DNA from: Octopus bimaculoides
Lineage: Eukaryota
NCBI RefSeq assembly: GCF_001194135.2
Contig: NC_068998.1
Span: forward strand, 10,742,378-10,781,930
Length of the DNA: 39,553 bases
Direction of reading: 5' to 3'
In this document: positions 15,604-37,389 of the stretch, piece after piece
Numbering within the stretch: position 1 is the stretch's first letter
Layout of the letters: each line of letters begins with the position of its first letter
Translations under genes and position numbers: made by a program
The notes under the pieces: generated by a model
The model's database searches: none
What the model was told of the DNA's origin: nothing
What the model saw: only the letters and a program-made list of their open reading frames with translations

Positions 15604-15658
15604 ATGAAGATTGTATTGCTCCTAGTTAGCTGCCTGTGTGCCGTTGTCTTCTGTCAGA
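15604..15658 (+). CDS. Exon 1 (signal peptide) of a secreted PAN-PAN-VWD-C8-TIL-EGF-VWA protein (zonadhesin/FCGBP/VWF-like)
   Basis: accATG start context. Translates MKIVLLLVSCLCAVVFCQ, a basic residue followed by a hydrophobic core. Ends at a consensus donor A|GTAAGT in phase 1, matching the phase-1 acceptor of exon 2. Too short to appear in the ORF track. Confidence 0.8.
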
Positions 15659-15687
15659 GTAAGTAGAATTTTGACTTGGTAGAATTT

Positions 15688-16004
15688 GGAACCTCGGTTT
15701 CCGAAATTAATTCGTTCCTGAAGGTCGTTCGTCACCCGAAATGTTCGTCCACCGAAACTATTTTTCCCTTAAGAAATTCAAGAGAAGGCATGGCGAATTC
15801 GAGCGGGTATGTCCACTGAGCCAAAGTTAGACAACAACCAACATTCTCTTTCTGATACTTCCAGCTTTGTCGCCAACATTTGTTCCTGGCTTGCGTGTTT
15901 GTTATTCGAGACACCGTTCGTCACCCCGAGACTTTATATTTGAAAAATTGTTCGTAAATCGATTTATTTGTGATGAGAGGCATTCGTAAACCGAGCTTCC
16001 GCTG
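15688..16004. mobile_element. Tigger/pogo (Tc1-mariner)-type MITE in intron 1
   Basis: GGAACCTCGGTTTCCGAA at the left and TTCGTAAACCGAGCTTCCGCTG|TA at the right are inverted repeats. The right end has CTG plus TA; the outermost left bases are missing. Confidence 0.6.
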
Positions 16005-16132
16005 TATTTCTTTCATGTGTGACTAACACGCGATTTGTAATGCAAGAAGTGACAAACTATGTTCACATTTAGTCGATACAACATGACTTCTACTCTCCTC
16101 TCAAGCCAGTTTTTTTTTATCTTTCACTTCTG

Positions 16133-16957
16133 TCTTTTACTTGTTTCGGTCATTGGACTGCGGCCATGCTGAGGCATCATCTTGAAGGGTTTAGTCGAAC
16201 AAATCGTTCCCAGTACATTTTTTAAAAGTTTTGTATTTACGTTTTTTCGTCTTTTTAGCAGAGCCAACCGCTCCGTTACGGAGACGTCAACAAACAACGA
16301 CACAAAGACAGACAGGCAGACACACACACACACTCACACCTACACATACACACACATATATATACTATATACAACGAGCTTCCAGACAGTTTCCGTCTAT
16401 CAAAATCACTCACAAAGCATGGGTCAGCCCGGGCCTATAGTAGAAAACAGACGCCCAAATTTTGCACAGTGGGACTGAATCCAAACTATGTGCTTGCAAA
16501 ACATGCTTCTTAACCATAGCCATGCACCTGCCAGCACAAGACTAGAAATTGCCAAACTCAAAGAAAATTCTAGAATAAGAGACTGGTAGATTCCAATGGC
16601 AGTAAAGTGTTCTTTTATCCTTTACTTGTTTCTGTCATCAGACCGTGGCCATGCTGGGGTACCGCTTTGAAGAATTTTAGTCAAACGGATCGACCCCAGT
16701 GCTTAGTTTTTAAAAGCCTGGTACTTATTCTATCGGTGTATTTTGCCGAAGCGCTAAGTTACGGTTTGTCAAGCGGTGGGATGGGGGACAAACACACATA
16801 CACACACATATACGACGGGCTTCTCTCAGTTTCCGCCTACCAGATATGATCACAGGGCCTTGGTCGGCCCGAGGCTACAGTAGAAGACACTTGCTCAATG
16901 TGCGACGCAGTGGGACTGAACCCGGAACTAAGTAGTTGAGAAGCAAACTCCTTACTG
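16133..16957 (-). mobile_element. Two tandem SINE family D copies (16133-16530, 16611-16957)
   Basis: Each starts tcttttacttgtttc.gtca..gac..ggccatgctg, has an internal (CA)/(TA)n tract and ends in the reverse-complemented tRNA-like head. Confidence 0.82.
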
Positions 16958-18690
16958 GGACATCAGGCCTGACGAGTAGGCAAGTGAATATCGATATCGT
17001 GTCCTGCTACCAATGCCACGGCATGTTTCTCCTAAGAGTAATTTCTACAAATTTTGTAAGACAGGAAGATGCAAGATCTTAGTATATATAAGAAGTTAAA
17101 ATAATTTCTCAATAATAGATTATAATATTAGGCAAGTCATTCACCTCTGATGCAGACAGTCTGAACTTCAATTAGACCATCTAGATATCGTGCGATTTTA
17201 TAACAAAGTCGATACCAATTTTATTATTAACAATGACTCATGTACTAAGTGAGTATATAGGTACTTGTTTAGTACATTAGATGCGGTTAGGTTTATGGTA
17301 TATCTGATGAGGATTTTATAAACTTGCTGTGAAGATTCTCCCATGAGAGAAACCTATAATAATTCAGAGTTTTTTATCAAGAGAAATGAGAGAACCTTTT
17401 TCATTCAAAAGGGTGAAAACTAGAATAAGCTCGGGAATATTTCAGTTATACCGCAAGCGGCTTGCTACTTTTGTGAAGAGAGTGTCCTGACAGCCAAGAG
17501 GGTTTAAAACAAGACCTGTTGAAAGGTAGATGACTTTCCTGTGAGCCAACGGCCATCCAGTTGGGAAAGGCAATGACAAACTACCCCAGTATCTCTGTCA
17601 AGGAAACAGCATGATAAAAACAGAACGAAGTAACGCTATAGCTTCACCCGATGGGAGAGCTCGCGCTTATCGGGAAAGCTTTCGTTGTAATGTTGTTAAT
17701 TTGGGGCCCTAGCCTGTGTATAGACTATGGATGATTAAATTACAACAGTGGTTATAATCCATTGTTTGTATCATAGTGCATTGTTGTGTCATTCAAAACA
17801 TTTTATTCTTTACGTAATTCTTTGTTTGTATGTTGTTTTTTAATTTTTTAAAATCTTTTTATACTAGACACTACGCCCGATGGATTGAACCGTTACCGAA
17901 GGGATATTAAGTATGATAAATACTTAATGAACGTTGAAATACCTGGAAGTAAGTATTCCTGCCTTTCTTCCTGCTGCCCTCCCTTCTTTCCTTCTTTCTT
18001 TCCTTTCTCGGTGGGGGCTTTTCTTTCTATATGGAGTCGTAGAAGCATTGTCGTATAATATACGGCTGGTCTTAGCGTCGGGTGGGGAAACAGCATTTTA
18101 TAAACCTGGTTGAACCTCTTCTTCTCTATGTCTAATCACAGCCGATTTCTCCCAGAGGGAGAGAGAAACGCGAGTGGGACAAAGTGAGGTAAAGAGAAAG
18201 AATAAGATAGGAATAAAGCGGAGCCTGACTAGAATCAAGATTAAAACCGGTTCTCGTATGTCAAATCAGTGCATCTCAGGGATTCTTTTATCTCTACCAA
18301 ATTAAAAGAAGCTTATAAATTCATATACTAAAAGAACATGGCCCATTTCTGCTTCACTTTTTCTATATACACCAAACCAAAGAGAAGTTTTTGTTTTTTA
18401 TAATTCTCTTTTTATTTTCTAATTTACTCACCTGTTCGTCTGAACTGATTCTTATAACATGAATGCTATTGAAAGTTTCTTTTTACAGCCGAAACGGTGC
18501 AAGGTTTCGACCAACTATTGGTCATTTCAAGAACTGTATGCATTCATTTCGATAATTTCTATCCATGTTCTTAATCAAGGGATCTTAATTATACAGTATA
18601 TTTCTTGTTGATAAGTTTCCCTACGCATTTGTGCGCAGAAGCTTTTACAAACACTTTGTAATCTTTCTTTTTTTTCTTTCTTTTTTTTTT

Positions 18691-19065
18691 ATCTTTTACT
18701 TGTTTCAGTCAATAAAACTGCAGTACCACCTGGAAGATATTTTTAGTTGAACAAATCGATCCCAGCCCTGTTTTTTTTATTTTATTTTATTTTTTTAAGC
18801 CTAGTACTTATTCTATCTGTCTCTGTTGACTAACTTTTAAGTTACAGAGACATAAACACCGGTTGTCAAGTGGTGCAATGGGGAAAACACGCGCGCGCAC
18901 GCGACAGACTTCTTTCAGTTTCTGTCTACCAAATCCACTTACAAGGCTTTGGTCGGCCCGAGGCTATAGTAGAAGACACCTGCCCAAGGTGCGACGAAGT
19001 GGGGATGAACCTGAAACCGTGTGGTTGGGAAGCAAACTTCATACCGCACAGCCACGCTTGCTCCT
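18691..19065 (-). mobile_element. SINE family D
   Basis: atcttttacttgtttcagtc...ccggttgtcaagtgg...acaaggctttggtcggcccgaggctatagtagaagacac...cacagccacgcttg. Confidence 0.82.
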
Positions 19066-19860
19066 ATTGTTAATAAAATTATTCTAATGTATAGTGACCC
19101 CTTTGTCAATTTTACTTTAGCCTATATTACAAATACCATTTTAAAGAATAATCGTCTATTCGGTCCGCAAGATCTAGTTTGNNNNNNNNNNNNNNNNNNN
19201 NNNNNNNNNNNNNNNNNNNNNNNNNNNNNNNNNNNNNNNNNNNNNNNNNNNNNNNNNNNNNNNNNNNNNNNNNNNNNNNNNNNNNNNNNNNNNNNNNNNN
19301 NNNNNNNNNNNNNNNNNNNNNNNNNNNNNNNNNNNNNNNNNNNNNNNNNNNNNNNNNNNNNNNNNNNNNNNNNNNNNNNNNNNNNNNNNNNNNNNNNNNN
19401 NNNNNNNNNNNNNNNNNNNNNNNNNNNNNNNNNNNNNNNNNNNNNNNNNNNNNNNNNNNNNNNNNNNNNNNNNNNNNNNNNNNNNNNNNNNNNNNNNNNN
19501 NNNNNNNNNNNNNNNNNNNNNNNNNNNNNNNNNNNNNNNNNNNNNNNNNNNNNNNNNNNNNNNNNNNNNNNNNNNNNNNNNNNNNNNNNNNNNNNNNNNN
19601 NNNNNNNNNNNNNNNNNNNNNNNNNNNNNNNNNNNNNNNNNNNNNNNNNNNNNNNNNNNNNNNNNNNNNNNNNNNNNNNNNNNNNNNNNNNNNNNNNNNN
19701 NNNNNNNNNNNNNNNNNNNNNNNNNNNNNNNNNNNNNNNNNNNNNNNNNNNNNNNNNNNNNNNNNNNNNNNNNNNNNNNNNNNNNNNNNNNNNNNNNNNN
19801 NNNNNNNNNNNNNNNNNNNNNNNNNNNNNNNNNNNNNNNNNNNNNNNNNNNNNNNNNNNN

Positions 19861-20052
19861 ATTACCGCTCCGGGCAAAATGCTTAGTGGTATTTCGTCCG
19901 CCTATACGTTCTAGGTTCAAATTCCGCCGTGATCGACTTTACCTTTCATCCTTTCGAGAACGATAAAATAAGTACCAGTTGAGCACTGATGTCTATGTAA
20001 TCGACTCACTTCCTTCTCCGAAATTGCTGGCCTTCTGCCAAAATTTGAAACC
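19861..20052 (+). mobile_element. SINE family C (5' end in gap)
   Basis: cgggcaaaatgcttagtggtatttcg...ggttcaaattccgccg...gccaaaatttgaaacc. Confidence 0.8.
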
Positions 20053-20141
20053 TTTGATTTGAAAGGGGGGGAAAAAACCTAGAAATTGTGTGTTCTGTGT
20101 TATTTTTTTTCTCATTGTTTGTTTTCTTCTTCTTCTTCCAG

Positions 20142-20381
20142 GTGTCATTACGAAAACATGGTTTATTGAAGTCAAGTACTGTTACGTACCACTCCACACC
20201 TATATCGACATTCACAGAAACATGTCGCTCAAAGACTGTGCTTACCAATGTCTTCTTACGCACGGTTGTCGGTCATTCGAATTTGGGAGAAAGAATAACA
20301 ACTGTTTCCTCTCTTACCACAATGGGCAACAAACCAAGGCCAAATACAGCCACTATAGAGATTTCTACCAGTTGCTTAACC
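20142..20381 (+). CDS. Exon 2: PAN/apple domain 1
   Basis: Pyrimidine tract ending cttccag|, donor C|GTAAGT, phase 1-1, 240 nt. Translates VITKTWFIEVKYCYVPLHTYIDIHRNMSLKDCAYQCLLTHGCRSFEFGRKNNNCFLSYHNGQQTKAKYSHYRDFYQLLN, with the PAN pattern S-x-x-x-C-x3-C...C-x-S-F-x-F...C-x-L...DFY. Confidence 0.9.
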
Positions 20382-20441
20382 GTAAGTATTCTAGAGTTAA
20401 ACTATTCTTAACATATTTTGTAGAGGGATTATTAAAACAAC

Positions 20442-20831
20442 TGTGGAGGTGCAATGGCCCAGTGGTTAGGGCAGCGGACTCGCGGTCATAGGATCGCGGT
20501 TTCGATTCCCAGACCGGGCGTTGTGAGTGTTTATTGAGCGAAAACACCTAAAGCTCCACGAGGCCCCGGCAGGGGATGGTGGCGAACCCTGCTGTGCTCT
20601 TTCACCACAACTTTCTCTCACTCTTACTTCCTGTTTCTGTTGTGCCTGTAATTCAAAGGGGCAGCCTTGTCACGCTCTGTGTCACGCTGAATATCCCCCC
20701 GAGAACTACGTTAAGGGTACACGTGTCTGTGGAGTGTTCAGCCACTTGCACGTTAATTTCACGAGCAGGCTGTTCCGTTGATCGGATCAACTGGAACCCT
20801 CGTCGTCGTAAGCGACGGAGGGCCAACAACA
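20442..20831 (+). mobile_element. tRNA-derived SINE, family A, full length
   Basis: TGTGGAGG start, A box TGGCCCAGTGG, B-box-like GGTTTCGATTCC, 3' hairpin CGTCG-TCGTAAG-CGACG, (CAA)n tail. 11-bp TSD with one mismatch: ATTAAAACAAC (20431-20441) and ATTAAAACAGC (20832-20842). Confidence 0.9.
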
Positions 20832-20864
20832 ATTAAAACAGCAATCGCAATGTCAATCATTGAG

Positions 20865-21566
20865 TAAGGCGGCGAGCTGGCGGAATCGTTAGCAGGCCGG
20901 GTAAAATGCTCAGCAACATTTCGTCTGTCTTTACTTTCTGAGTTCAAATTCCGCCAGTGTCGATTTTTGTCTTTCATCTTTTCGGAGTCGATAAAGTAAG
21001 CATCAGTGGAACACCGGAGTCAATGTAATCGACTTAACCCTCGACGATGTTGCTGGCCTTGTGCCGAAATTTGAAATCAGTATTAACCATTGAGTAGCAT
21101 TATCTATGATATTCTTTTCTACTCTAGGCACAAGACCCGAAATTTTTAGAGAGGGAGCCAGTCGATTAGATCGACCCAAGTAGGCAACTGGTACTTAATT
21201 TATCGACCCCCGAAAGGATGAAAAAGCAAAGTCGACCTCGGTGGAATTTGAACTCAGAACGTAAAGACAGACGAAATACTGCTAAGCATTTCGCCCGGCG
21301 TGCTAACGTTTCTGCCAGCTTGCTGCCTTATTTATCTATGACATCATTAAGGCGGTGATTTGGCAGAATCGTGAGCATGTCAGATAATGCTTAATGGCAT
21401 TTCTTCCGGCTTTACGCCCAGAGTTCAAATTCTACCGGGGTCGACTTTACCCTTAATTCTTTCGAGATCGATAAAATAAGCATCAATTGAGCACATGCAT
21501 CAATGTGATCGACTATTCCTCTCCCAGCAAATTCCAGGCGTTGGGCCTATAATAGAAAGAATTATC
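20865..21566. mobile_element. Three SINE family C copies: 20865-21080 (+), 21110-21330 (-), 21348-21566 (+)
   Basis: Consensus matches. The minus copy is flanked by TTATCTATGA (21100-21109 and 21332-21341), a likely TSD. Confidence 0.85.
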
Positions 21567-21610
21567 TGTGTTATTGTTTCTCCCCACATGAGTTCGAGTA
21601 TTATGCTTAA

Positions 21611-21874
21611 CTATGGAACCAAATCAAAGACTATAATCGAATTCTTTTTAACGTAACGAGAGAAGAATGTTGGGCGTTTAACAATGAAATCAAAGACATT
21701 GTGGCAATCTCTAATGTAACAAATGAAAGTTATCCATCCGTCTTCTCTGCATACTATTCGTAGGAGGGTTATGAATGTAGTGCTCAGGTATCTTCTCCAT
21801 AGGGTCCTATCAGAAGTAGCCGTCATTATATTTTCCGGCTGGGTTCCCTTGTGACCAACTGAGACTATGGGCAT
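21611..21874 (-). mobile_element. Possible degenerate Penelope-like reverse transcriptase remnant
   Basis: LWRRYLSTTFI...EDGWITFICYIRDCHNVFDFIV resembles WxRYxDDTFxI...E.L..F...LN..H..IKFT. The catalytic DD is not preserved, so this is weak. Confidence 0.35.
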
Positions 21875-22755: not shown

Positions 22756-22829
22756 CCTGTTTACGTCGTCAACACGATTTAGAATTTTTACTTTGTTTAA
22801 TTTTTTTTTTTTTTTTTTCATTATTCCAG

Positions 22830-23060
22830 CTAATGAAGAATATATCAAGATACTCGGAGTTTCAATCAGAGATCATGACCTGGAGAGACTACGCAACGTC
22901 AGTGTGGAAGAATGTCTTGATAAATGCAGGACTTTGCCATACTGTAATGTGATGGAATACAAAAAACAGCATAACAAATGTGACTTATCGAACGTGACTT
23001 ATTCTAAATATCCGCTCAGTGTGAACTTCTTTGGTTGGGACTTCTACCAGAAGAATCCGA
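22830..23060 (+). CDS. Exon 3: PAN/apple domain 2
   Basis: Poly-T tract then ttccag|, donor A|GTACGT, phase 1-1, 231 nt. Translates NEEYIKILGVSIRDHDLERLRNVSVEECLDKCRTLPYCNVMEYKKQHNKCDLSNVTYSKYPLSVNFFGWDFYQKNP, with four PAN core cysteines and the terminal WDFY motif. Confidence 0.9.
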
Positions 23061-23113: not shown

Positions 23114-23505
23114 TGTGGAGGCGCAATGGCCCAGTGGTTAGGGCAGCGGACTCGCGGTCATAGGATCGCGGTTTCGATTCTCAGACCGGGCGCTGTGAGT
23201 GTTTATTGAGCGAAAACACCTAAAAGCCCCACGAGGCTCCGGCAGGGGATGGTGGCGAACCCTGCTGTACTCTTTCACCACAACATTCTCTCACTCTTAC
23301 TTCCTGTTTCTGTTGTGCCTGTAATGCAAAAGGGTCAGCCTTGTCACACTCTGTGTCACGCTGAATCTCCCCGAGAACTACATTAAGGGTACACGTGTAT
23401 GTGGAGTGCTCAGCCATTTACACGTTAATTTCACGAGCAGGCTGTTCCGTTGATCGGATCAACTGGAACCCTCGACGTCGTAAGCGACGGAGTGCCGACA
23501 ACAAC
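23114..23505 (+). mobile_element. tRNA-derived SINE, family A, full length
   Basis: Same head, body and tail as 20442. Perfect 11-bp TSD ATACCACCTGA at 23103-23113 and 23506-23516. Confidence 0.92.
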
Positions 23506-23819: not shown

Positions 23820-24400
23820 GCTAACGTTGTGACTGCCCGTCAAAAGTGATGACAGCGTCGATCCATGACGTTCATTCTTCTCTGCCTCCAATATATCGTT
23901 TCTCGTGGGATCGGGCGTGGCTGGAAGATCGATACGAGACAGGCAGATCCTATGGCATTGAGGACACTGAGAGTGATCCCGAACAACAACTGCAGTGAGG
24001 TTGATGACCACATCTCTTCCTCCCTCATAGTTCCTCGCATTCAAAGCGTTCTACTCAAATTCCACCAGTGTCGATTTTTGCCTTTCATCCTTTCGGACTC
24101 GATAAAGTAAGCATCGGTGGAACACCGGAGTCAATGTAATCGACTTAACCCTCCACGAAATTGCTGGCCTTGTGCCGAAATTTGAAATCAGTATTAAACA
24201 TTGAGTAGAATTATCTATGATATTCTTTTCTACTCTAGGCAGAAGACCCGAAATTTTTAGAGAGGGAGCCAGTCGATTAGATCGACCCAAGTAGGCAATT
24301 GCCACTTAATTTATCGCCCCACGAAAGGATGAAAAGCAAAGTTGACCTCGGCGTTCTACTGCTTTTCGATCGTTTCATCGGTGAGAAATAACAGCCTAAT
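23820..24400 (-). mobile_element. 3' remnant of an RTE-clade LINE ORF2, interrupted by the 24056-24350 insertion
   Basis: Minus strand gives CPQCHRICLSRIDL (RTE-type C-terminal CxxCxRxCxSRIGL zinc-finger-like motif). Removing the insert and one TSD copy restores RKAVERFE across the junction, resembling the RTE ...GxxxFExxR segment. Confidence 0.62.
24056..24350 (+). repeat. 295-bp duplicate of 20945-21240 (tail-to-tail SINE C pair plus unique spacer) flanked by a 10-bp direct repeat
   Basis: About 18 differences in about 296 nt by manual alignment. Shares private variants and the spacer cagtattaa.cattgagtag.attatctatgat. GCGTTCTACT lies at 24046-24055 and 24351-24360. Confidence 0.9.
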
Positions 24401-24882
24401 CTCCCTTAAATTACACATCAGCGTCTGAAAATAAAAACAGAGCACACATTTGGTATTGTAGTCCGAGANNNNNNNNNNNNNNNNNNNNNNNNNNNNNNNN
24501 NNNNNNNNNNNNNNNNNNNNNNNNNNNNNNNNNNNNNNNNNNNNNNNNNNNNNNNNNNNNNNNNNNNNNNNNNNNNNNNNNNNNNNNNNNNNNNNNNNNN
24601 NNNNNNNNNNNNNNNNNNNNNNNNNNNNNNNNNNNNNNNNNNNNNNNNNNNNNNNNNNNNNNNNNNNNNNNNNNNNNNNNNNNNNNNNNNNNNNNNNNNN
24701 NNNNNNNNNNNNNNNNNNNNNNNNNNNNNNNNNNNNNNNNNNNNNNNNNNNNNNNNNNNNNNNNNNNNNNNNNNNNNNNNNNNNNNNNNNNNNNNNNNNN
24801 NNNNNNNNNNNNCACACACACACACACACGCACGCGTGCATACTCATGGAAACATGTGTAATATATATCTATGTGTCTAGAT

Positions 24883-25710: not shown

Positions 25711-25885
25711 GAAAAATTTGTGGTGGAAGAGTACAGCAGGGTTCGCCACCATCCCCTGCCGGAGCCTCGTGGAGCTTTAGGTGTTTTCGCTCAATAAACA
25801 CTCACAACGCCCGGTCTGGAAATCGAAACCGCGATCCTATGACCGCGAGTCCGCTGCCCTAACCACTGGGCCATTGCGCCTCCAC
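25711..25885 (-). mobile_element. SINE family A, 5' half only
   Basis: Reverse complement of the tRNA-like head through ...gtactcttccaccacaaa. The 3' half is absent. Confidence 0.88.
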
Positions 25886-26325: not shown

Positions 26326-26588
26326 AAAAACCGCCTCTCAAGGGCAAAAATTGCAAATGTTCAGCTTCTGGAGATCCTCACTACCGAACCTTTGACGGCC
26401 AACTGATCCACTTTATGGGAACGTGCAAATATACTTTGGCAAGATCTCTGCAATCCAAAGGCGCTAGATTTTTCAATGTTGAAGTGAAGAACGAAAACAG
26501 AGGTAACAAGAAAGTGTCTTACACCCGTATGGTTGACATTATTCTGAACGGTGTCCGTATCCGTTTATTGCCAAAACTCAAGATGAGG
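26326..26588 (+). CDS. Exon 4: N-terminal half of a von Willebrand factor type D (VWD) domain with GDPH motif
   Basis: Acceptor ctgttacag| (phase 1), donor AGG|GTAAGT (phase 0). Translates KPPLKGKNCKCSASGDPHYRTFDGQLIHFMGTCKYTLARS...FNVEVKNENRGNKKVSYTRMVDIILNGVRIRLLPKLKMR. C-x-x-S-GDPHYxTFDG...F-x-G-x-C-x-Y-x-L is the canonical VWD start. Confidence 0.93.
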
Positions 26589-27999: not shown

Positions 28000-28277
28000 A
28001 GATCGGAGCTGACTAAGGACTAAACTACAACAATAATGGCAGCAGCAGCATGATTATCCTTAAATCTACATCATGTAATCTTCAATTATCTCATCATATT
28101 CTTAATCATGACCATTTCACTTATGATGATTATTTCACTACTCATCGCCACCACCACCACCAAAATCATCATCATCATCGTCATCATTATCATCATCAAC
28201 AACGTGTCTATTTAAATACGACTAAAATTTAATTCTTTTATTTGTTATCTTGGAGGTGGAGGCAGTCGGTCTTATTA

Positions 28278-28572
28278 TTGTTGTTGGCACTCCGTCGGTT
28301 ACGACGACGAGGGTTCCAGTTGATCCGATTAACGGAACAGCCTGCTCGTGAAATTAACGTGCAAGTGGCTGAGCACTCCACAGACACGTGTACCCTTAAC
28401 GTAGTTCTCGGGGATATTCAGCGTGACAAGGCTGACCCTTTGAATTACAGGTACAACAGAAACAGGAAGAAAGAGTGAGAGAAAGTTGTGGTGAAAGTGT
28501 ACAGCAGGGTTCGCCACCATCCCCTGCCGGAGCCTCATGGAGCTTTAGGTGTTTTCGCTCAATAAATACCCA
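28278..28572 (-). mobile_element. SINE family A, head lost in gap, small internal deletion
   Basis: Matches 9105-9414 except for loss of the segment between two GTGACA repeats. Confidence 0.88.
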
Positions 28573-29051
28573 NNNNNNNNNNNNNNNNNNNNNNNNNNNN
28601 NNNNNNNNNNNNNNNNNNNNNNNNNNNNNNNNNNNNNNNNNNNNNNNNNNNNNNNNNNNNNNNNNNNNNNNNNNNNNNNNNNNNNNNNNNNNNNNNNNNN
28701 NNNNNNNNNNNNNNNNNNNNNNNNNNNNNNNNNNNNNNNNNNNNNNNNNNNNNNNNNNNNNNNNNNNNNNNNNNNNNNNNNNNNNNNNNNNNNNNNNNNN
28801 NNNNNNNNNNNNNNNNNNNNNNNNNNNNNNNNNNNNNNNNNNNNNNNNNNNNNNNNNNNNNNNNNNNNNNNNNNNNNNNNNNNNNNNNNNNNNNNNNNNN
28901 NNNNNNNNNNNNNNNNNNNNNNNNNNNNNNNNNNNNNNNNNNNNNNNNNNNNNNNNNNNNNNNNNNNNNNNNNNNNNNNNNNNNNNNNNNNNNNNNNNNN
29001 NNNNNNNNNNNNNNNNNNNNNNNNNNNNNNNNNNNNNNNNNNNNNNNNNNN
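28573..29051. other. Assembly gap predicted to hide the missing VWD exon(s)
   Basis: Only uncalled sequence between exon 4 and the C8 exon. Other gaps: 3853-4720, 9415-9803, 12171-13120, 19182-19860, 24469-24812, 34167-34458, 38097-38350. Confidence 0.7.
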
Positions 29052-29103
29052 GACTAAATATTTCGTCCAGCGTGCTAACGACTCTGCCAGTTCGCCGCCT
29101 TAG

Positions 29104-29688: not shown

Positions 29689-29966
29689 ATGTGAAGAGAA
29701 AGATCCTAACCCTGATGAGGTATGTAAAATAAACGGAGAAAAATACTGTAATATTATCCGCAATCCAAGAGGGATGTTTGGGAAATGCATCGAAAAGCTG
29801 GGAGCAGAGGATGTCAGAGAATTCTATGAGTCTTGTTTGTACGATTATTGCTTTTATGCCAATTCGACATTCATCGAAAGTATTGTATGCGCCGCCCTGG
29901 AGAGTTTTGCTGCAGAATGCGAAGCGGCTGGAGTCGTCTACAATTGGAGGTTTCTTGTCAATTGTC
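29689..29966 (+). CDS. Exon encoding end of VWD linker plus C8 domain
   Basis: Acceptor atattcag| (phase 2), donor C|GTGAGT (phase 1). Translates CEEKDPNPDEVCKINGEKYCNIIRNPRGMFGKCIEKLGAEDVREFYESCLYDYCFYANSTFIESIVCAALESFAAECEAAGVVYNWRFLVNC. The C..F..C..D.C...C..L..FA..C...G...WR...C pattern is typical of C8. Confidence 0.92.
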
Positions 29967-30374: not shown

Positions 30375-30459
30375 ATTTTCCGTCTTGCTACTCTATTGGC
30401 GTTTTGTTGTTGCAGTTGTTGCTGCTGTTGTTTTTCTTAGACGCTCCTATTTTAAAAGG

Positions 30460-30844: not shown

Positions 30845-30871
30845 AATGGTCGATTAGTTCAGCCAGTGTTC

Positions 30872-31107
30872 AGGCATGGCTGCAGAGTTAACAAACATAT
30901 TTTCAACCACGGGGTTTGTATTTCAGTCCAACTGCGCAGCGCTTTGGGCGAGTGCTTTCTGCTATAGTCCCAGGTTAAAGGTCAACTCTGCCTTTCAAGC
31001 TTCCAGGATCGGTAAAATAAAATACCAGTTGAGTACCGGGGTTGATAGTATCGGCCTGTCCCTTTTTCTTAAATTTGCCGGCGTTGTGTCTAAATCAGAA
31101 ACTATTT
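30872..31107 (+). mobile_element. Chimeric SINE: family D head joined to family C 3' half
   Basis: ggcatggctgcagagttaac...ttcagtccaactgcgcagcgctttgggcgagtgctttctgctatagtcccagg (D head) then ggtcaactctgcctttca...ggtaaaataaaataccagttgag...aaatcagaaactatt (C core and tail). Confidence 0.6.
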
Positions 31108-31476
31108 TCAGATATAGCGAACATGCCACATATACACACACGTGTATTTACTTATGTATGCGTGTATGTGTGTGTGTATATATATACTCTTCGAAACGCC
31201 AGTGTTAGAATGGAGGCAGCTGATGAAGGATATGTTCTCTATGTGGCCTGTGTGTTTTCTATACTCTGTTTATCATTTGTCTACGTTTTGTTTGCAACGT
31301 CCTGTACCCAGATATGCATCTATTTATACATGTAGATGTTGGTATGTACATACATGTACGTATATATGCATATACCCATTTATTATTTGTATTATATATG
31401 TATGTATGCATGTTAAATTGTTTCGTGTCTCTAAGTGCTTATATGTAAGAGCATATAAAACATGTACTTCATCTAG

Positions 31477-31670
31477 CCATGGATTGCCCGGACAACATGG
31501 AATACAAGTACAAAGCTAGTGGATGCCAACCAACCTGTGTAGAGGCGAGCCCAGATTGTATCAGAGAAGAAATTGAAGGATGTGTGTGCAAACATGGTTA
31601 CGTCCTCAGTGGAGAGAATTGCATTAAACCACGTGACTGTGGTTGTACCTACGACGAATTTTACATCAAG
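31477..31670 (+). CDS. Exon encoding TIL (trypsin inhibitor-like Cys-rich) domain and start of TILa/E module
   Basis: Acceptor catctag| (phase 1, joins NC|P). Translates MDCPDNMEYKYKASGCQPTCVEASPDCIREEIEGCVCKHGYVLSGENCIKPRDCGCTYDEFYIK. It is an 8-Cys TIL lacking both partners of the usual C2-C6 pair. The 3' end is placed at a non-canonical AAG|GCAAGC donor (phase 0), required by the next exon's phase. Confidence 0.88.
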
Positions 31671-32729
31671 GCAAGCAGTATTTCTTTCTCTTGTCCATTC
31701 TGCTCTGTTCTCCACTTACGTTTCTCTTATCTATTTTGCTTTCTCTCCTCCATTCTGCTCTATGTAGTCCACTCTATCCTCTACGTGTATTTGCAAGCTG
31801 ATTTAATTTCTACTGAAGTATGTAATTGCAGCCAATAACTCGGGTTCCTTTTATTGAGCCTGGTCGCAGTTCATTTATTTTCCTTCGGTGTCTGGCGGTC
31901 ATCGTAGAGGTGCCCTGTGTCAAAAAGTATCATTCATAGCAGACGTTCTCTCGAGCACCTGACTCGGTCTCAGAAATTGCAGCCCGAGTTGTTATCTATA
32001 ATCGTAAAAATTAAAAGTAATTCAATGTTTTCTTGAAACAATAAATTTCTAGGATTTTTTTGGTTTGACGGGCAACACTTGTTTTCTTAACGAAACACTT
32101 TCAAACTTGGGACACCTGGTAGAATGTGTCATATAAAACAACTTTTTCTCTTAGCCTTCTTAACAAAAAATTGTACATCGCAAGTTATTTCATGTTAAAG
32201 TTGTCGTATTTCTGTAATTTCAACCAATCACTGACGTCTATTCAGCTCTATAGAGATTAGGATTTAAATTTCAATCTATGAAAAGTTTCCGTTTTACAAT
32301 GTTCTTAAAGGAGCGAAAAGTTATCCAGCAATTCGGGCTAATACGAACGAGCCTAGTAGGTGTAAAAAAAACTAACTGACATCTCTTGTCAAGAGTACAG
32401 ACACTGTCGTTATTTGATTACTGTTATTCTGTGCGTCTGTGTGCAAAGATCAGTTGTGTCTTGCAGGGCTGTTTTATTTTTACCCTTAACTTAGAAATGG
32501 AGAAAGGCATAGTGCTAAATATAAAAAATAAGCCATTTGTGGGATTAGAAATAAAGCAGGAAAACGTGTAATTTTTCGAGCAGGCATATATGTCATATGC
32601 GAAATCTGTGATGAGGAGCCCGAGTGACGATGATGACCTGAAGTCGCCTCTGATATGTATGTCTGTGTAATAAGAAGTAAAAACGATTTTAAAAATCCAG
32701 GCAGATATCTATTAAGCACTCAGTGTTTA

Positions 32730-32992
32730 GTGGAGGCGCGTGGCTTAGTGGTTAGGGTGTCAGCATCATGATCGTAAGATTGTGGTTTCGATTCCTGGAC
32801 CGGGCGATGCGTTGTGTTCTTGAGCAAAACACTTCATTTCACGTTGCTCCAGTCCACTCAGCTGGCAAAAATGAGTCACGCTGCGATGGACTGGCGTCCC
32901 GTCCAGCTGGGGAACGCATACGCCATTGAAACCGGGAAACCGGGCCCATGAGCCTGGCTAGGCTTTAAAAGGGCGCATTTATTTATTTATTT
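32730..32992 (+). mobile_element. tRNA-derived SINE, family B (CORE-like centre), full length
   Basis: Head TGGAGGCGCGTGGCTTAGTGGTTAGG...GGTTTCGATTCC, CORE-like ttcttgagcaaaacactt...aaaaatgagt, then ctgcgatggactggcgtcccgtccag and an (ATTT)n tail. TSD ACTCAGTGTT at 32718-32727 and 32993-33002. Confidence 0.85.
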
Positions 32993-33064
32993 ACTCAGTG
33001 TTAAACGAATTTGGTAAATTATATCCAATAATCAGAGACCAATAGATACATGCAAGTATACATA

Positions 33065-33290
33065 TTTTCTTTTTCTTTTTCTCGCTTTCTTTTCTTTTCT
33101 TTTTTTTCACTTTCTTTTCTTTTTTTTCACTTTCTTTTCTTTCTTTTCACTTTCTTTTCTTTTTTTTTCACTTTCTTTTCTTTTTTTTTTCACTTTCTTT
33201 TCTTTTCTTTTTTTCACTTTCTTTTGTCCTCTTTTTTCACTTTCTTTTGTCCTCTTTTTTCACTTTCTTTTGTCCTCTTTTTTCTTCATT
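33065..33290. repeat. Near-pure pyrimidine minisatellite, unit about (T)nCACTTTCTTTT(C/GTCCTC)
   Basis: About 9 imperfect units. The only regular purine is the A of CACTTT, plus G in the later units. Confidence 0.9.
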
Positions 33291-33448
33291 CTACTTCCTT
33301 TTTACCCTTTTATCACATTTTCCCCTCCTTGTTATTCCCTACAACCGGAAACCTATGTGTATAGATGTGCAACCTCCATCATTTCTTCAGTCGTAATTTG
33401 GTTGAAGATCATGAGCATTAACGGACGAAACTCAGAGTAATAAGAGAC

Positions 33449-33449
<1 letters not shown>

Positions 33450-33496
<47 letters not shown>
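33450..33496. repeat. (TG)n microsatellite
   Basis: Direct inspection. Confidence 0.95.
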
Positions 33497-33498
<2 letters not shown>

Positions 33499-33599
33499 TT
33501 GTCTTAGGAACAAAATCGAAACGGAGATTTCTTTTTAGTTGCACCTATATATATCGCTGCATAATTATCATTGTAAGATTCCATCAATGTTACTTTCAG

Positions 33600-33804
33600 T
33601 TGGGCAGCAACTTGACCCTACCCGGTTGCACTAAGATAGCTGTGTGCGAAAAAGACGGAACAGCAAGAGGACAACAGAAAATTGTTGATATTGAAGGCTG
33701 TGTGGAGAATTCACAGTGCATCACTCGGGAAGGAGTCTGGCAATGTGTCTGTAATAAAGGATTCGCATACAATGACAACAAGACCGAATGTGAGAAAGTT
33801 CCAG
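33600..33804 (+). CDS. Exon encoding rest of TILa/E module plus EGF-like module
   Basis: Acceptor tactttcag| (phase 0), donor G|GTAAAG (phase 1). Translates LGSNLTLPGCTKIAVCEKDGTARGQQKIVDIEGCVENSQCITREGVWQCVCNKGFAYNDNKTECEKVP, including the EGF-type C-x-C-x2-G-F...C motif. Confidence 0.88.
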
Positions 33805-33994
33805 GTAAAGTCGAAACGACGTTTGTATTTCACAGGGTTGTGAGAGACGTAATTACATTTCTGTATGTTTGCACATCTACGTGTGTCGTGTGCGTGTGTA
33901 CACACACACACACACACACACACTCATTAATAGACAGAAATACGTACATACATAATATATACATTTATACATGTATGTATGTATGTATGTATAC

Positions 33995-34606
33995 TCTTTT
34001 ACTTGTTTCAGTCATTTGACTGCGGCCATGCTGGAGCACCGCCTTTTAGTCGAACAAATCGACCCCAGGACTTATTCTTTGGAAGCCTAGTACTTATTCT
34101 ATCGATCTCTTTTGCCGAACCGCTAAGTTACGGGGACGTAAACACACCAGCATCGGTTGTCAAGCGNNNNNNNNNNNNNNNNNNNNNNNNNNNNNNNNNN
34201 NNNNNNNNNNNNNNNNNNNNNNNNNNNNNNNNNNNNNNNNNNNNNNNNNNNNNNNNNNNNNNNNNNNNNNNNNNNNNNNNNNNNNNNNNNNNNNNNNNNN
34301 NNNNNNNNNNNNNNNNNNNNNNNNNNNNNNNNNNNNNNNNNNNNNNNNNNNNNNNNNNNNNNNNNNNNNNNNNNNNNNNNNNNNNNNNNNNNNNNNNNNN
34401 NNNNNNNNNNNNNNNNNNNNNNNNNNNNNNNNNNNNNNNNNNNNNNNNNNNNNNNNNNATATATATATACATATATATATACGACGAGCTTCTTTCAGTT
34501 TCCGTCTACCAAATCCACTCACAAGGCTTTGGTCGGCTCGAGGCTATAGTAGAAGACACTTGCCCAAGGTGCCACGCAGTGGGAATGAACCCGGAACCAT
34601 GTGGTT
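33995..34606 (-). mobile_element. SINE family D whose internal microsatellite is an assembly gap (34167-34458)
   Basis: Near-consensus 3' part before the gap, and (AT)n plus the head part after it. Confidence 0.88.
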
Positions 34607-34849
34607 AAAAATATAAAGACAGATGGAAATGCCCGCAAATATATTGGTCTTACACTTTAAAAATCAAAATCACCCTGTCTTAAAATACAAATATCAATTT
34701 GATTAATTACATACTGGAGTCGATAAATCGATCATATCCTCCCCAAGCATGTTCGGCTCTGCTGGCCTTACTAGCCTTACGCCTATTTTGGGAATTATTA
34801 TATTTGTTTTATAAATGATAAATGTTACAAAAGCATAAATATTAAAGAT

Positions 34850-35295
34850 GGCCTAAAACTTTTTGCAGAATCGTTAGGGTCGAGTAAATCACCTTGTCGT
34901 ATTTAAATATGTCCTTTACGTTCCGAGTTCAAATCTCGCTGATGTGAACTTTGTCTTTTATCATTTCAATATCAGTAAAATAAAGCATCAGTGCACTACC
35001 GAGTTCGATTCTTCTCTGTTACTCTCTTTTCCCCGCTTTCTCTCTCTCACTCTGTCTTTCTCTCTTTCCCTCTCTCTCTCTCTCCCACTCATCGTCTTTC
35101 CTTATCTCTCTGTCCTTCTCCTCTCCCCTCTCTCTCTCTCACGATTGTGCAAGTTATCCAAAGTCTCACATCTAGACAGATCATGGCACACTGATTCAGC
35201 CCAAGAACTACGTTAAAGTTACATGTGCCTGCGAAATACTCAACCGCTTACAGGTTAATTTCAGTTGGTCAAACAACCGAATGCCCCTTGTCGAA
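34850..35295 (+). mobile_element. Degenerate composite: family C head and core, (CT)n tract, family A-like tail
   Basis: gcagaatcgttagg...gagttcaaatctcgctgatgtgaactttgtctttta...; (CT)n at about 35011-35141; then cccaagaactacgttaaagttacatgtgcctgcgaaatactcaaccgcttacaggttaatttca, resembling the A tail gagaactacgttaagggtacacgtg...cacgttaatttca. Confidence 0.5.
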
Positions 35296-35657
35296 ATAGA
35301 CGGAGAACCTGTCCCAATTCCCACTAGAAGTTGCGTAGTTGGAATGTGCACCGCCCGGGGCTGTTCTTCAGTTTGCATCTACTTTCTCTGGCCCATAAGC
35401 CTATATAAGCTTATACAACAGACCCAAAAGTTGCATTCCCGTCAAAGCATCGCTCGGAGCTCGAACGCTCCTCTCCCCCTCTCCCCGCTGCTGTCCACCA
35501 GTCGGTTGTTGAACACACAGCAAGAAGTTTTGCTTGAACCAGTGTTAGAAAATAATACATATCAATTGATATAGCATCATATATATATTTATATAACATC
35601 AAATATAATTTTCTATAATGAATTGTTAATATGTTATGTTGTTTGTCACCCTGCTAG

Positions 35658-35887
35658 TCTGTGGAGTTGAACCTATTGACATCCAGTTTGTGGTTGACAT
35701 ATCCAGCAGTATTAGAGAAGAAGGACTCTACGAAACCAAAAAATTCCTTACGGAATTTGTCAACGCTTCGGTCATTTCTCCTACACAAGCTCAATTAGGA
35801 ATTCTGCTATTCAATTCTAAAGTCACCAATAAGTTTTACATTGAAGACTCCAAGACTAAGGAAGAAATCAAAGATGCTATCGAAACG
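35658..35887 (+). CDS. Exon encoding N-terminal part of VWA domain
   Basis: Acceptor ccctgctag| (phase 1), donor ACG|GTAAGT (phase 0). Translates CGVEPIDIQFVVDISSSIREEGLYETKKFLTEFVNASVISPTQAQLGILLFNSKVTNKFYIEDSKTKEEIKDAIET, with the MIDAS DxSxS (DISSS). Confidence 0.92.
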
Positions 35888-36804
35888 GTAAGTATTTATT
35901 GACTTCCAGTGATTTCTTCCCCCGTCTTCGAATATCATCGTTCGCTTTGTTTGAGAGGGTACCAAATTTCAAAGAATAGTATTGGCAGTTTATATTCAAG
36001 ACAGTATCGTTGTTCGGGATTAAGAAACCGACCGTAAATCTTAGCATATAAAACGCAATTTTTTCTCCAAAAATAATATCACAAAAATATCATCCCCAGT
36101 GATATTTTTGTGTTGGGCTCCGATAACATGGTTTAATGTTGGGCCCCTATAACAAGCTTTAATGCACTAAAGCCCGTTTTTCTTGACTTTGACTATCTGT
36201 TAGTTCTCTCTTTGCCATGGAGCAGATGAGGTTCCTCTGAACGAAACCATAGTAAAGGAAAACAAACACGCCATAAATATCCTCGAGATTGTAATTGATT
36301 CGCTCTTTAATGTGAATGAAATGTCTCACTTCATAATAAATCTAAAGAAAAAGTTACAGATTTTGATGATTTCTAGAAAGAATTAAATAGTGCTATACAT
36401 AATCGCTACCAGCAAGAAATTATCACAACTTCGAAATAAAGAAAATAAATGAATAAATAATATGTGAACTCTATTCACATTCTTTTATGTATTCCTCAAT
36501 TTCAAATCCCTCCTCATGGTGTGAGGGGACGGTTATCTCCCTTTTATTAACAGTCTTTGCCAGAGGGAACCACATGTATAATTAGGGAGAATTTACGAAA
36601 AAAACAACAGACGAGGACAGGTGGTCTAAACAACAAAAGGATGTATTAGTTTAACGCTCGGAAATAAGAAAATCTTTAACGTTTCGAGCTACGCTCTTCC
36701 ACAGAAAGAATATGGAGAAAACAAGGAGAAAAACAATTGAATGTTTTGGTCAGCGATCTATCATGGCGACTCATGTATAATCACCTTTATTGTCATTACT
36801 TCTT

Positions 36805-37027
36805 GGGCAGTAAGTTGACATAATTGTTACCCCACTGGGCAAAATGCTTCGCGGTATTTCTTTCGGTTATTTACTTTCTGAGTTCAGGTGTCATTGAGGT
36901 CAACTTTGTCTTTCATCCTTTCGGGGTCGATAAAACAAGTACCAGTTGAGCACTGGGAGTCAATGTAATCGATTTTATCCCTCCTCTTAAAATTGTTGGC
37001 CCTGAGCCCAAATTAGAAAGAATTATT
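36805..37027 (+). mobile_element. SINE family C immediately upstream of the terminal exon acceptor
   Basis: gggcaaaatgcttcgcggtatttc...gaggtcaactttgtctttcatcctttcggggtcgataaaacaagtaccagttgagcactgg...ccaaattagaaagaattatt. Confidence 0.8.
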
Positions 37028-37059
37028 ACAATAGCTTTTGTTTCTATTCCCATTTCTAG

Positions 37060-37389
37060 ATCGGACCCGTACACAGTGGAACAAGACTTGGTGCTGCTCT
37101 CCGGTTCACGTCAACCTCTGCGCTCTCACTACACACCGTTCGAAAAGACGTCAAGAGAGTGGTAATAGTCATCACTGATGGTCAAATCTCAAACGTGCCG
37201 GAAATCGCACGCTGGAGTAAACATATACACGTTGTCCAGAAGGCCAAGATCGTAGTCATCGCTGTCGGGCGCAAAGACGATACAGGTCTGCGTGAAATGA
37301 GACGCGGCGGAGGCAAGGTACTACATGCGTCACGTTACAACATCATACAACGAGTAATTGACGAACTCTACCTAGTGGTTTGTAAATAA
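37060..37389 (+). CDS. Terminal exon: C-terminal part of VWA domain and stop
   Basis: Acceptor catttctag| (phase 0). Translates IGPVHSGTRLGAALRFTSTSALSLHTVRKDVKRVVIVITDGQISNVPEIARWSKHIHVVQKAKIVVIAVGRKDDTGLREMRRGGGKVLHASRYNIIQRVIDELYLVVCK*. It has the MIDAS T (GT) and D (ITDG), and a C-terminal Cys able to pair with the Cys before the domain. No transmembrane segment. Confidence 0.92.
   Translation: MGPVHSGTRLGAALRFTSTSALSLHTVRKDVKRVVIVITDGQISNVPEIARWSKHIHVVQKAKIVVIAVGRKDDTGLREMRRGGGKVLHASRYNIIQRVIDELYLVVCK

Follow-up and report, generated by a model that had tools for sequence, protein, structure and literature searches.

The Octopus bimaculoides locus analysed here is one 12-exon gene for a secreted cysteine-rich mosaic protein of about 840 amino acids. 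It lies in a stretch of 39,553 nucleotides (the window; NC_068998.1, positions 10,742,378 to 10,781,930). Ten of the 12 exons can be read in the window, while the other two, coding for an EGF-like module and the second half of the VWD domain, very probably sit inside assembly gaps. The order of the protein is signal peptide, 27-aa linker with an RYRR motif, PAN, PAN, EGF-like, VWD, C8, TIL, E, EGF-like and VWA. On balance we favour a joint reading in which this single orthologue gene encodes an extracellular adaptor that would be autocleaved at GDPH, would carry its PAN pair and VWA domain as binding modules and would operate in a mucus or matrix setting.

Gene Structure and Domain Content

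The initial annotation had joined nine exons in frame, apart from one gap, from the ATG at 15604 to the TAA at 37387-37389. All nine were found on the plus strand and are real; an additional exon at 17868-17948 had been missed, and two further ones are very probably hidden in gaps. Acceptors are AG at every exon and donors are GT throughout, with the exception of a GC donor (AAG/GCAAGC) after the TIL exon, which is conserved in O. sinensis. The chain of phases holds as proposed: exon 1 ends in phase 1, both PAN exons are 1-1, the first VWD exon is 1-0 and, after a break, the C8 exon is 2-1, TIL 1-0, E/EGF 0-1, the first VWA exon 1-0 and the second 0-stop. The PAN2-to-VWD join, however, passes over the hidden EGF-like exon and seems continuous only because that exon is itself 1-1. 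Each N-terminal module is encoded by a symmetric phase 1-1 exon. This pattern fits assembly by exon shuffling, which may be how this part of the gene arose.

Each of the ten readable exons has one counterpart, of identical length and with the same splice dinucleotides, in the O. sinensis locus sequence used for exon mapping (L001), which has no gaps. Since this agreement is accompanied by a dN/dS of 0.44 overall (0.60, fairly high, for the 3' half), the locus is far beyond chance. The 134 bp in front of the ATG (15470-15603, plus strand) are about 98% identical to O. sinensis, compared to about 88-92% in introns, and contain a TATA element, TATATAAAG (15547-15555). This proximal promoter/5' UTR region presumably acts as the promoter.

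Exon 1 (15604-15658; L001 10001-10055) provides the ATG and the signal-like peptide MKIVLLLVSCLCAVVFCQ. This is the sole Kyte-Doolittle hydrophobic stretch of the protein, in agreement with its earlier description as secreted and free of transmembrane segments. Exon 1b (17868-17948; 81 nt, phase 1-1, AG/GT) encodes NTTPDGLNRYRRDIKYDKYLMNVEIPG with the dibasic RYRR at 17891-17902. It has a tblastn match to the O. sinensis orthologue, is present in RefSeq models P0220 and P0001 and is missing from the Argonauta model. Exon 2 (20142-20381; 240 nt, 92.9% nucleotide identity to L001 17830-18069) codes for the first PAN module (Pfam PAN_1) and exon 3 (22830-23060; 231 nt, L001 21131-21361) for the second (PAN_1, PAN_4). 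The label "apple" given to these modules is too specific, because they have five and four cysteines, respectively, instead of the six of the apple pattern.

Exon 4 (26326-26588), assigned by Pfam VWD and alignment to FCGBP, codes for a linker and the first half of VWD and includes the GDPH motif (26370-26381). Exon 6 (29689-29966; L001 28117-28394) encodes the end of the VWD-C8 linker and the C8 domain. It is followed by the TIL exon 7 (31477-31670), whose GC-donor junction at 31671 is confirmed by public proteins P0215 and P0216. Alignment to the TIL-E-linker region of FCGBP places an E module and a small EGF-like module in exon 8 (33600-33804), a region that the structural model of the orthologue predicts with a pLDDT of about 90. 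The VWA domain is divided between exon 9 (35658-35887; Pfam VWA, alignment to PTMP1 and collagen VI) and exon 10 (37060-37389), which also contains the terminal cysteine and the stop codon. The MIDAS-type residues that had been noted are all present, with DISSS at 35696-35710, SGT at 37075-37083 and TDG at 37174-37182. An AATAAA at 37385-37390 overlaps the stop codon.

The Pfam matches (PAN_1 1.7e-15 over two stretches, C8 5e-12, TIL 3e-7, VWA 5.5e-26, and VWD 2.4e-15 covering only the first half, positions 1-73 of 156, of the profile) support the proposed set of a PAN pair, one D assembly and a C-terminal VWA. EGF_3 and cEGF matches were below the curated cutoff. The overall order of the initial annotation also stands, although it lacked the EGF-like module before VWD and the 27-aa RYRR linker.

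Exons Probably Hidden in Assembly Gaps

Comparison with O. sinensis divides the gaps into those which are purely intronic (19182-19860 and 34167-34458) and those which replace exon-bearing segments (24469-24812 and 28573-29051). The hidden exons were placed by collinearity with this sister species and not read in O. bimaculoides. The gap at 24469-24812 is flanked by 24360-24468, corresponding to L001 21939-22047, and by 24813-24859, corresponding to L001 22779-22825. Between these aligned flanks O. sinensis has a 114-nt, phase 1-1 EGF-like exon (L001 22560-22673; FCDLKCGPMERCKIENSQKKCVCYPGCIKLPSGKGCY), for which tblastn found no match anywhere in the window. Similarly, the flanks of the gap at 28573-29051 (28205-28271 and 29052-29102) correspond to L001 26985-27051 and 27546-27596, and the segment it replaces includes the 314-nt, phase 0-to-2 exon for the second half of VWD (L001 27089-27402). 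This exon includes the cysteine of GLCGDC, partner of the cysteine preceding GDPH. Both missing exons are exactly bracketed by the gap flanks and have the phases that the window requires, so far as collinearity can tell. A repeat at 28275-28572 extends into the second of these gaps.

Orthologues and Public Annotation

The locus is already annotated, though split and automatically named. The window is identical to O. bimaculoides chromosome CM046618.1 (GCA_001194135.2), and the annotation of this assembly divides the locus between LOC128249920 and "cartilage matrix protein-like", two genes whose products P0220 (291 aa) and P0216 (383 aa) are two halves of one locus. Public annotation splits the gene because the assembly gaps hide two exons. 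The orthologues are uncharacterised and carry the automatic names "zonadhesin" and "zonadhesin-like": XP_029645815.1 of O. sinensis ("zonadhesin"; 844 aa) is 87% identical, and the protein of Argonauta hians has 815 aa. In both species a single full-length model comes from one gene. When the PAN-PAN-EGF region was the query of an exhaustive profile search, this PAN pair occurred together with VWD/VWA solely in the cluster of octopod orthologues, which bears out the earlier impression that this combination of domains falls outside the characterised named families.

Could the NCBI annotation be right, with separate genes for SP-PAN-PAN-half VWD upstream and C8-TIL-VWA downstream? Both models do rest on GCA_001194135.2, and an older UniProt entry spans TIL-VWA only, but we regard two genes as highly improbable. 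The split coincides exactly with an assembly gap, the 291-aa model stops in the middle of VWD, and the 383-aa model begins at an internal methionine encoded by the C8 exon and lacks a signal peptide. Moreover, the phases across the gap require an exon of 3n+2 nucleotides, which the 314 nt of O. sinensis satisfy, and two independent annotations of other octopods have one protein here. We give little more credence to a decaying gene, in which deletion or breakage of one or both hidden exons would leave a pseudogene or a truncated product. Such decay would be compatible with neither exon being readable in the window, with the repeat inserted beside the gap at 28573 and with the dN/dS of the 3' half. 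Against it, all ten exons that can be read are intact: their splice sites are conserved, and their frames are free of stop codons and frameshifts. The overall dN/dS (0.44) and the conservation of the promoter (about 98%) also count against it, as does the collinearity of the flanks with O. sinensis on both sides of each hidden exon.

Relationship of the D Assembly to FCGBP

By sequence and predicted fold, the D assembly is nearest to FCGBP and not to VWF or zonadhesin. Each FCGBP D unit matches it at about 1e-40 to 1e-46, and Foldseek aligns the orthologue model to 8r0t_B with a TM-score of 0.77 (rmsd 4.2 Å, 26% identity). The pLDDT of this model exceeds 90 over residues 205-655; PAN and VWA are poorly modelled (below 60). 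The likeness to FCGBP covers VWD-C8-TIL-E and both flanking cysteine-rich linkers, at only about 26-29% identity, and both proteins are secreted and lack a CTCK. FCGBP differs in having 7-13 D assemblies instead of one and an N-terminal PF17517 domain absent from the octopus protein, and in lacking the two PAN modules and VWA.

In FCGBP, all GDPH-containing VWDs are cleaved and then held by one disulfide, C472-C611, and the cleavage gave no covalent cross-links (PMC8267560). The cleavage needs the Asp and His of the motif (PMC10880436). The window gene has C-S-A-S-G-D-P-H, with the cysteine at -5 as in FCGBP, and the partner cysteine also aligns (C389 of the orthologue with FCGBP C611). Residue +14 from the GDPH Asp is Met, compared to Gln in FCGBP D10, where mutating this Gln partly lowered cleavage (PMC10880436). 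By analogy, autocleavage of the octopus protein is probable, with one disulfide holding the parts together.

The VWA Domain

Judged by sequence, the VWA domain is nearest to collagen VI and mussel PTMP1, and not to VWF or matrilin. Among solved structures it matches collagen VI alpha-3 and PTMP1 best, then the collagen-binding integrin alpha-1/alpha-2 I domains and VWF A3, and its DxSxS, T and D residues align with theirs. The name "mini-VWF" used initially is thus an analogy only, given the nearest relatives of the D assembly and of VWA. PTMP1, a molluscan matrix protein of the VWA type, has a metal-occupied MIDAS in structure 4cn9. Like matrilin and PTMP1, the octopus protein has a matrix-type VWA with MIDAS residues adjoining an EGF-like module; it differs in having a single VWA combined with a D assembly and PAN modules, and lacks a C-terminal coiled coil, ending two residues past the last VWA cysteine.

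Proposed Function

After entry into the secretory pathway, VWD would cut itself between the Asp and Pro of GDPH, as in FCGBP, giving a chain of about 27 kDa (PAN-PAN-EGF) and another of about 65 kDa (VWD to VWA). The two would stay joined by a shared beta-sheet and one disulfide, between the cysteine five residues before the Asp and that of the GLCGDC motif. RYRR is a predicted dibasic cut site. The cleaved protein may serve as an extracellular adaptor in mucus or another secreted matrix, with the PAN pair binding a protein or glycan partner and VWA binding, via its metal site, a matrix partner (a collagen-like or other acidic ligand). The roles put forward initially, in mucus, adhesive, egg casing or wound plugging, are candidate functions, and indirect evidence for them comes only from a domain-permuted paralogue in octopus skin mucus (see below).

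The same protein could instead serve gamete adhesion or the egg coat, as a product of reproductive tissue. This is suggested by the automatic naming of the orthologues and by "zonadhesin"-annotated transcripts that are regulated in the oviducal gland and the white body of O. maya (PMC8976471, PMC6522055), but we consider it unlikely. The name stems from generic VWD similarity, there are many "zonadhesin-like" genes in Octopus, and the O. maya qPCR primers are unmatched at the locus even when three mismatches are allowed. Mammalian zonadhesin does share VWD-C8-TIL and an EGF-like module with the octopus protein, but it has several D assemblies instead of one and no PAN or VWA, while its MAM domains, mucin-like region and transmembrane segment are absent from the octopus protein. 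A similarly low probability applies to a clotting or wound-plug factor of haemolymph or haemocytes, comparable to VWF or insect hemolectin. In its favour, VWA directly follows the D assembly, as in VWF D'D3-A1, with termini stapled by cysteines in both proteins; the solved relatives of VWA are collagen binders, and in a Foldseek comparison the model aligns with the VWF D1-A1 tubule (E = 1e-27). The TM-score to VWF is low, however, and as a single unit the model fits FCGBP best. The octopus protein lacks A2/A3 and D4 as well as the D1-D2 propeptide, CTCK and C domains that serve multimerisation, and the VWF A domains are weak matches to its VWA (about 1e-5), poorer than collagen VI or PTMP1. 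Nor is VWF one of the proteins for which GDPH has been reported (PMC10880436).

A Permuted Paralogue and Skin Mucus

Overall, the product of the window gene may be a secreted mucus or matrix adaptor, a function suggested by analogy. The paralogue LOC115209496 (P0012), like the related proteins P0015 and P0024, is built from the same modules (VWA, EGF, D assembly and a PAN-PAN-like pair), with a GDPH-carrying D assembly about 50% identical to the window gene in VWD. LOC115209496 is located on another chromosome and its order is permuted (VWA-EGFx4-VWD-C8-TIL-TILa-PAN-PAN), with only 22% identity in VWA and 25% in the PAN pair. The accessions and tryptic peptides of the window gene's orthologue did not turn up among those skin-mucus supplement entries of PMC10138644 that the comparison covered. 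The same source reports LOC115209496 as identified by mass spectrometry in O. vulgaris skin mucus, in a proteome enriched in VWD and VWA domains (PMC10138644).

Exon structure and contents of the assembly gaps

All nine exons which the initial annotation had placed between 15604 and 37389 are present on the + strand. They begin with E1 (15604-15658, ATG, MKIVLLLVSCLCAVVFCQ) and the two PAN exons, E2 (20142-20381, 240 nt, PAN 1) and E3 (22830-23060, 231 nt, PAN 2), both in phase 1-1. E4 (26326-26588) opens the VWD domain and ends in phase 0, and E6 (29689-29966), which needs two bases at its start, encodes C8. They are followed by E7 (31477-31670, TIL), E8 (33600-33804, E and EGF-like), E9 (35658-35887, first half of VWA) and E10 (37060-37389, second half of VWA and the TAA stop). 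Acceptors are AG throughout and donors are GT, with the sole exception of AAG/GCAAGC following the TIL exon.

Three pieces found in the orthologues were missing from this model: a 27-aa segment, an EGF-like module and the second half of VWD. The first is encoded by exon 1b (17868-17948, + strand, 81 nt, phase 1-1, AG/GT), which places NTTPDGLNRYRRDIKYDKYLMNVEIPG after the signal peptide; RefSeq includes this exon in both Octopus species, and the Argonauta model lacks it. The other two pieces were not found by tblastn of the whole window, which has eight N runs (39% G+C overall). L001, the O. sinensis locus, has no gaps and runs collinear with the window, with about 88-92% of nucleotides identical; gap contents were placed by fine alignment and exact exon mapping. 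The flanks of gap 24469-24812 (24360-24468 and 24813-24859) correspond to L001 21939-22047 and 22779-22825, between which lies a 114-nt phase 1-1 EGF-like exon (L001 22560-22673). The flanks of gap 28573-29051 (28205-28271 and 29052-29102) correspond to L001 26985-27051 and 27546-27596, enclosing a 314-nt exon running from phase 0 to phase 2 (L001 27089-27402), exactly as E4 and E6 demand. Gap 19182-19860 covers intron sequence only. Gap 34167-34458 is inside a repeat insertion (33992-34606) absent from O. sinensis, where L001 positions 36179 and 36184 are contiguous; the intron that separates TIL from E is about 4 kb longer in O. sinensis (L001 30592-34565).

The initial annotation had described the exons as joined in frame apart from one gap. 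The phases do chain except between E4 and E6, but the PAN2-to-VWD junction passes over the hidden EGF-like exon and only appeared continuous because this exon is symmetric and keeps the frame. The gene model can therefore be improved from nine to twelve exons. Each N-terminal module (linker, PAN1, PAN2 and EGF-like) is encoded by a symmetric phase 1-1 exon, with lengths of 81, 240, 231 and 114 nt, the last placed from O. sinensis. This is the pattern classically left by exon shuffling, whereas phases are mixed among the exons of the D assembly and of VWA. We rejected chance ORFs as an explanation of the locus, and likewise a bacterial-style interpretation of the ORF list. No further gene was detected within the window, and tRNA and Rfam scans of it were empty.

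One gene annotated as two

The public annotation (GCA_001194135.2, CM046618.1) divides the locus into two genes. LOC128249920 codes for a 291-aa product with a signal peptide, two PAN domains and half of VWD, ending in ...KLKMRM. XP_052830235.1, a 383-aa 'cartilage matrix protein-like' product, starts inside the C8 exon, at an internal Met. In UniProt, the older entry A0A0L8GUU7 is limited to TIL-VWA. As the two-gene split halves VWD and leaves the 3' model without a signal peptide, it is best explained by the assembly gaps, and single models exist in O. sinensis (XP_029645815.1, 844 aa, named 'zonadhesin', 87% identical) and in Argonauta hians (815 aa, 'zonadhesin-like', 67% identical). The ten readable exons have the same lengths and the same splice dinucleotides as in O. 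sinensis, including the GC donor. When the O. sinensis EGF-to-VWD segment was used as a protein query for a transcript-derived, gap-bridging O. bimaculoides protein, only the truncated LOC128249920 product was returned. Repair of the gene model joins LOC128249920 and the adjacent 'cartilage matrix protein-like' gene as halves of one gene.

That the gene is live is also supported by dN/dS against O. sinensis, which is 0.44 overall, with 0.32 for the PAN exons, 0.21 for the first VWD exon and 0.60 for C8-to-VWA, the last value being compatible with relaxed constraint and positive selection alike.

Domain composition

The architecture of the product is signal peptide, linker (RYRR), PAN, PAN, EGF-like, VWD (with GDPH), C8, TIL, E, EGF-like and VWA. 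In comparison with the order proposed initially, the PAN, VWD, C8, TIL and VWA modules were recovered with Pfam, while the first EGF-like module and exon 1b had been missed. The spliced product matched PAN_1 (1.7e-15, two stretches; 57 bits, the cutoff being 21.4), C8 (5e-12), TIL (3e-7) and VWA (5.5e-26, 92 bits). VWD scored 2.4e-15 over profile positions 1-73 of 156 only in the window product and was found in full (positions 1-156) in the orthologue. EGF_3 and cEGF remained under the Pfam curated cutoff, and TILa had no match. The D assembly expected by the initial annotation is present: VWD, C8, TIL and E are contiguous and ordered, the second half of VWD being seen in the orthologue and falling into a gap in the window. 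The E region aligned to FCGBP and has a pLDDT of about 90 in the model of the orthologue. The only hydrophobic stretch is N-terminal, in agreement with a secreted protein having no transmembrane segment.

Membership of the PAN modules in the PAN/apple superfamily is clear, but the name 'apple' given to them initially does not hold. The apple domain proper of factor XI and prekallikrein has six cysteines in three disulfides, C1-C6 among them, while PAN1 has five, without a C6 partner, and PAN2 has four; by cysteine pattern both are generic PAN domains. The first Cys of PAN1 is an orphan, and in the mature orthologues P0001 (O. sinensis) and P0002 the number of Cys is odd (49 and 47), a hint of a free thiol or of a disulfide between molecules.

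The MIDAS of the VWA domain is intact as reported, with DISSS, SGT and TDG aligned with those of the mussel byssal protein PTMP1 and collagen VI. Its residues are kept in all three orthologues, and the metal site is putative. The closest solved relatives of this domain are collagen VI alpha-3 and PTMP1, followed by the I domains of the collagen-binding integrins alpha-1 and alpha-2 and by VWF A3. The protein ends (...LYLVVCK) immediately past VWA.

Relation to known D-assembly families

When the stretch that runs from the EGF-like exon through E8 was compared with solved structures, FCGBP came top, each of its D units at about 1e-40 to 1e-46, followed by MUC5AC, VWF, MUC5B and MUC2. The flanking EGF-like modules align with the Cys-rich linkers which separate successive D assemblies of FCGBP, and the core thus looks like one excised FCGBP-type repeat. 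The AlphaFold model of the orthologue exceeds a pLDDT of 90 for residues 205-655 only, PAN and VWA being too poorly modelled for use; its best single-unit superposition was on FCGBP 8r0t_B (TM 0.77, rmsd 4.2 A, 26% identity).

None of the five named families compared here accommodates the protein, in line with the initial annotation, which had seen no match to a named family. FCGBP proper combines FCGBP_N with 7-13 tandem D assemblies, while here there is one VWD and no PF17517 match. The description of the protein as a 'mini-VWF' holds only as an analogy, since the D assembly is closest to FCGBP and the VWA domain to collagen VI and PTMP1. VWF is built of a D1-D2 propeptide, D'D3, A1-A2-A3, D4, C domains and CTCK; the octopus protein has one VWD and one VWA, no VWC or CTCK, and lacks the D1-D2 propeptide, A2/A3 and the C domains. 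Zonadhesin is excluded by a single D assembly with no MAM match, no mucin region and no hydrophobic segment beyond the signal peptide. Gel-forming mucins have PTS regions, several D assemblies and a cystine knot, no such regions being present in the 844-aa orthologue. Matrilin (cartilage matrix protein) has VWA-EGF(-VWA) followed by a C-terminal coiled coil for oligomerisation, but the octopus protein stops straight after VWA. Both 'zonadhesin' and 'cartilage matrix protein' are misleading names. In its mode of working the octopus protein would most resemble an FCGBP-type protein of mucus or matrix to which two further binding modules had been added. With this gene the D-assembly family of FCGBP, mucins and VWF gains a compact member restricted to one lineage.

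GDPH motif and a possible two-chain molecule

VWD GDPH motifs were reported to self-cleave between Asp and Pro in FCGBP, MUC2, MUC5AC, MUC4, BMPER and RGM, among others (PMC10880436). In FCGBP every GDPH is cut early in biosynthesis, and the fragments are held by one disulfide between the Cys five residues before Asp and a Cys of the CGLC region; cleavage stabilises the domain and creates no covalent cross-links (PMC8267560). In the window, GDPH is located at 26370-26381 and E4 encodes C-S-A-S-G-D-P-H, so that a Cys stands at -5 of Asp with the same spacing as FCGBP C472-D477. The partner position belongs to the gap-hidden exon, and orthologue C389 aligned to FCGBP C611. GDPH at the beta1-beta2 turn, the upstream Cys and, from the orthologue, the partner Cys are thus all in place, and a two-chain molecule is predicted. 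Self-cleavage (GD/PH) would yield a PAN-PAN-EGF chain (about 27 kDa) and a VWD-to-VWA chain (about 65 kDa) tethered by the disulfide, with one binding module at each end. Anhydride cross-linking is not claimed here, as FCGBP cleavage proceeds without covalent cross-links. The RYRR motif of exon 1b is a candidate convertase site.

We infer the function of the gene product from the families of its modules. The PAN-PAN-EGF 'hand' and the D-assembly-VWA 'hand' may each hold a ligand and so connect the two within mucus or some other secreted matrix. The complete scenario, which we consider improbable as it stands, is of an octopod-specific two-chain cross-linker, GDPH-cleaved, tethered by one disulfide and a shared beta-strand, with a ligand link that reduction or force could release, and made by shuffling phase 1-1 PAN/EGF exons onto an excised FCGBP-type repeat. 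For the study of GDPH cleavage, a protein carrying just one D assembly would be far more tractable as a model than the 13-D FCGBP.

Distribution and paralogues

We searched 1.84 billion representative proteins exhaustively with a PAN-PAN-EGF profile. Among its 166 hits no non-octopod orthologue was detected, and VWD, C8, TIL and VWA were absent from all 148 other representatives listed (phmmer, run without a positive control). The best hits beyond the orthologue cluster were very large octopus proteins, in which as many as 21 PAN modules are combined with Sushi repeats, along with unrelated mosaics containing PAN. Of the D-assembly hits, only those from octopods had both VWD and VWA. The C-terminal profile search matched only the window's own fragment and is silent on distribution. 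The initial observation was accurate and its interpretation is supported in part. The architecture is unusual and octopod-restricted within searchable data; however, every module is standard, and the sequence is already public, like its orthologues, under automatic names. Full-text literature search on the accessions of the gene and its orthologues gave no mention, and a search for an octopus PAN/VWD/VWA architecture gave no paper.

The paralogue LOC115209496 (P0012), on another O. sinensis chromosome, has the same modules in a permuted order, VWA-EGFx4-VWD-C8-TIL-TILa-PAN-PAN-like. Octopods thus reuse the same modules, namely a PAN pair, EGF, a D assembly bearing GDPH and VWA, in at least two orders. 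P0012 and P0218 lie on one chromosome of O. sinensis, and the relatives P0015 and P0024 on one of O. vulgaris, which suggests a paralogue cluster.

The LOC115209496 peptide SYQVPDDSDKPEK was detected in the skin mucus of O. vulgaris, which is enriched in VWD and VWA domains (PMC10138644); this is the sole, indirect hint at where the PAN/VWD/VWA family works. The orthologue accession and six tryptic peptides had no match in the searched parts of the supplements to the skin-mucus proteome from O. vulgaris. VWD mosaics recur in limpet adhesive mucus (PMC7333891). The O. maya 'zonadhesin' qPCR primers (PMC6522055) had no match in the window at up to three mismatches, so the published 'zonadhesin' expression data concern another gene. 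Peptides of the gene product suited to proteome matching are TFDGQLIHFMGTCK and VVIVITDGQISNVPEIAR.

Flanking sequences and repeats

The 134 bp before ATG (15470-15603) are about 98% identical to O. sinensis, far over the intron background, and contain TATATAAAG at 15547-15555, so that the segment looks like a conserved core promoter. A candidate alternative first exon (ATG, MGNEQKGQIATESIK) lies at 14955-15000, with a donor GT at 15001 in phase 1. In model P0003 of O. vulgaris it replaces the signal-peptide exon, but since the resulting protein would have no signal peptide, it is probably an annotation artefact. At the 3' end, AATAAA (37385-37390) overlaps the stop TAA (37387-37389) and another AATAAA follows about 175 bp downstream, their role in polyadenylation being putative.

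A SINE-like dispersed repeat of about 300 bp, with copies 89-93% identical, occurs at 9105-9412 and 28275-28572 on the + strand and at 20524-20833, 23196-23504 and 37699-37990 on the - strand, with a partial copy at 25711-25804. Two copies enter gaps (at 9415 and 28573), which is the probable reason for the assembly breaks there. Other repeat families occupy most introns, none overlapping an exon. The next gene downstream (L002 26404-27616, about 8.8 kb past the 3' end of the window) is on the minus strand and codes for a CoaE (dephospho-CoA kinase) domain.
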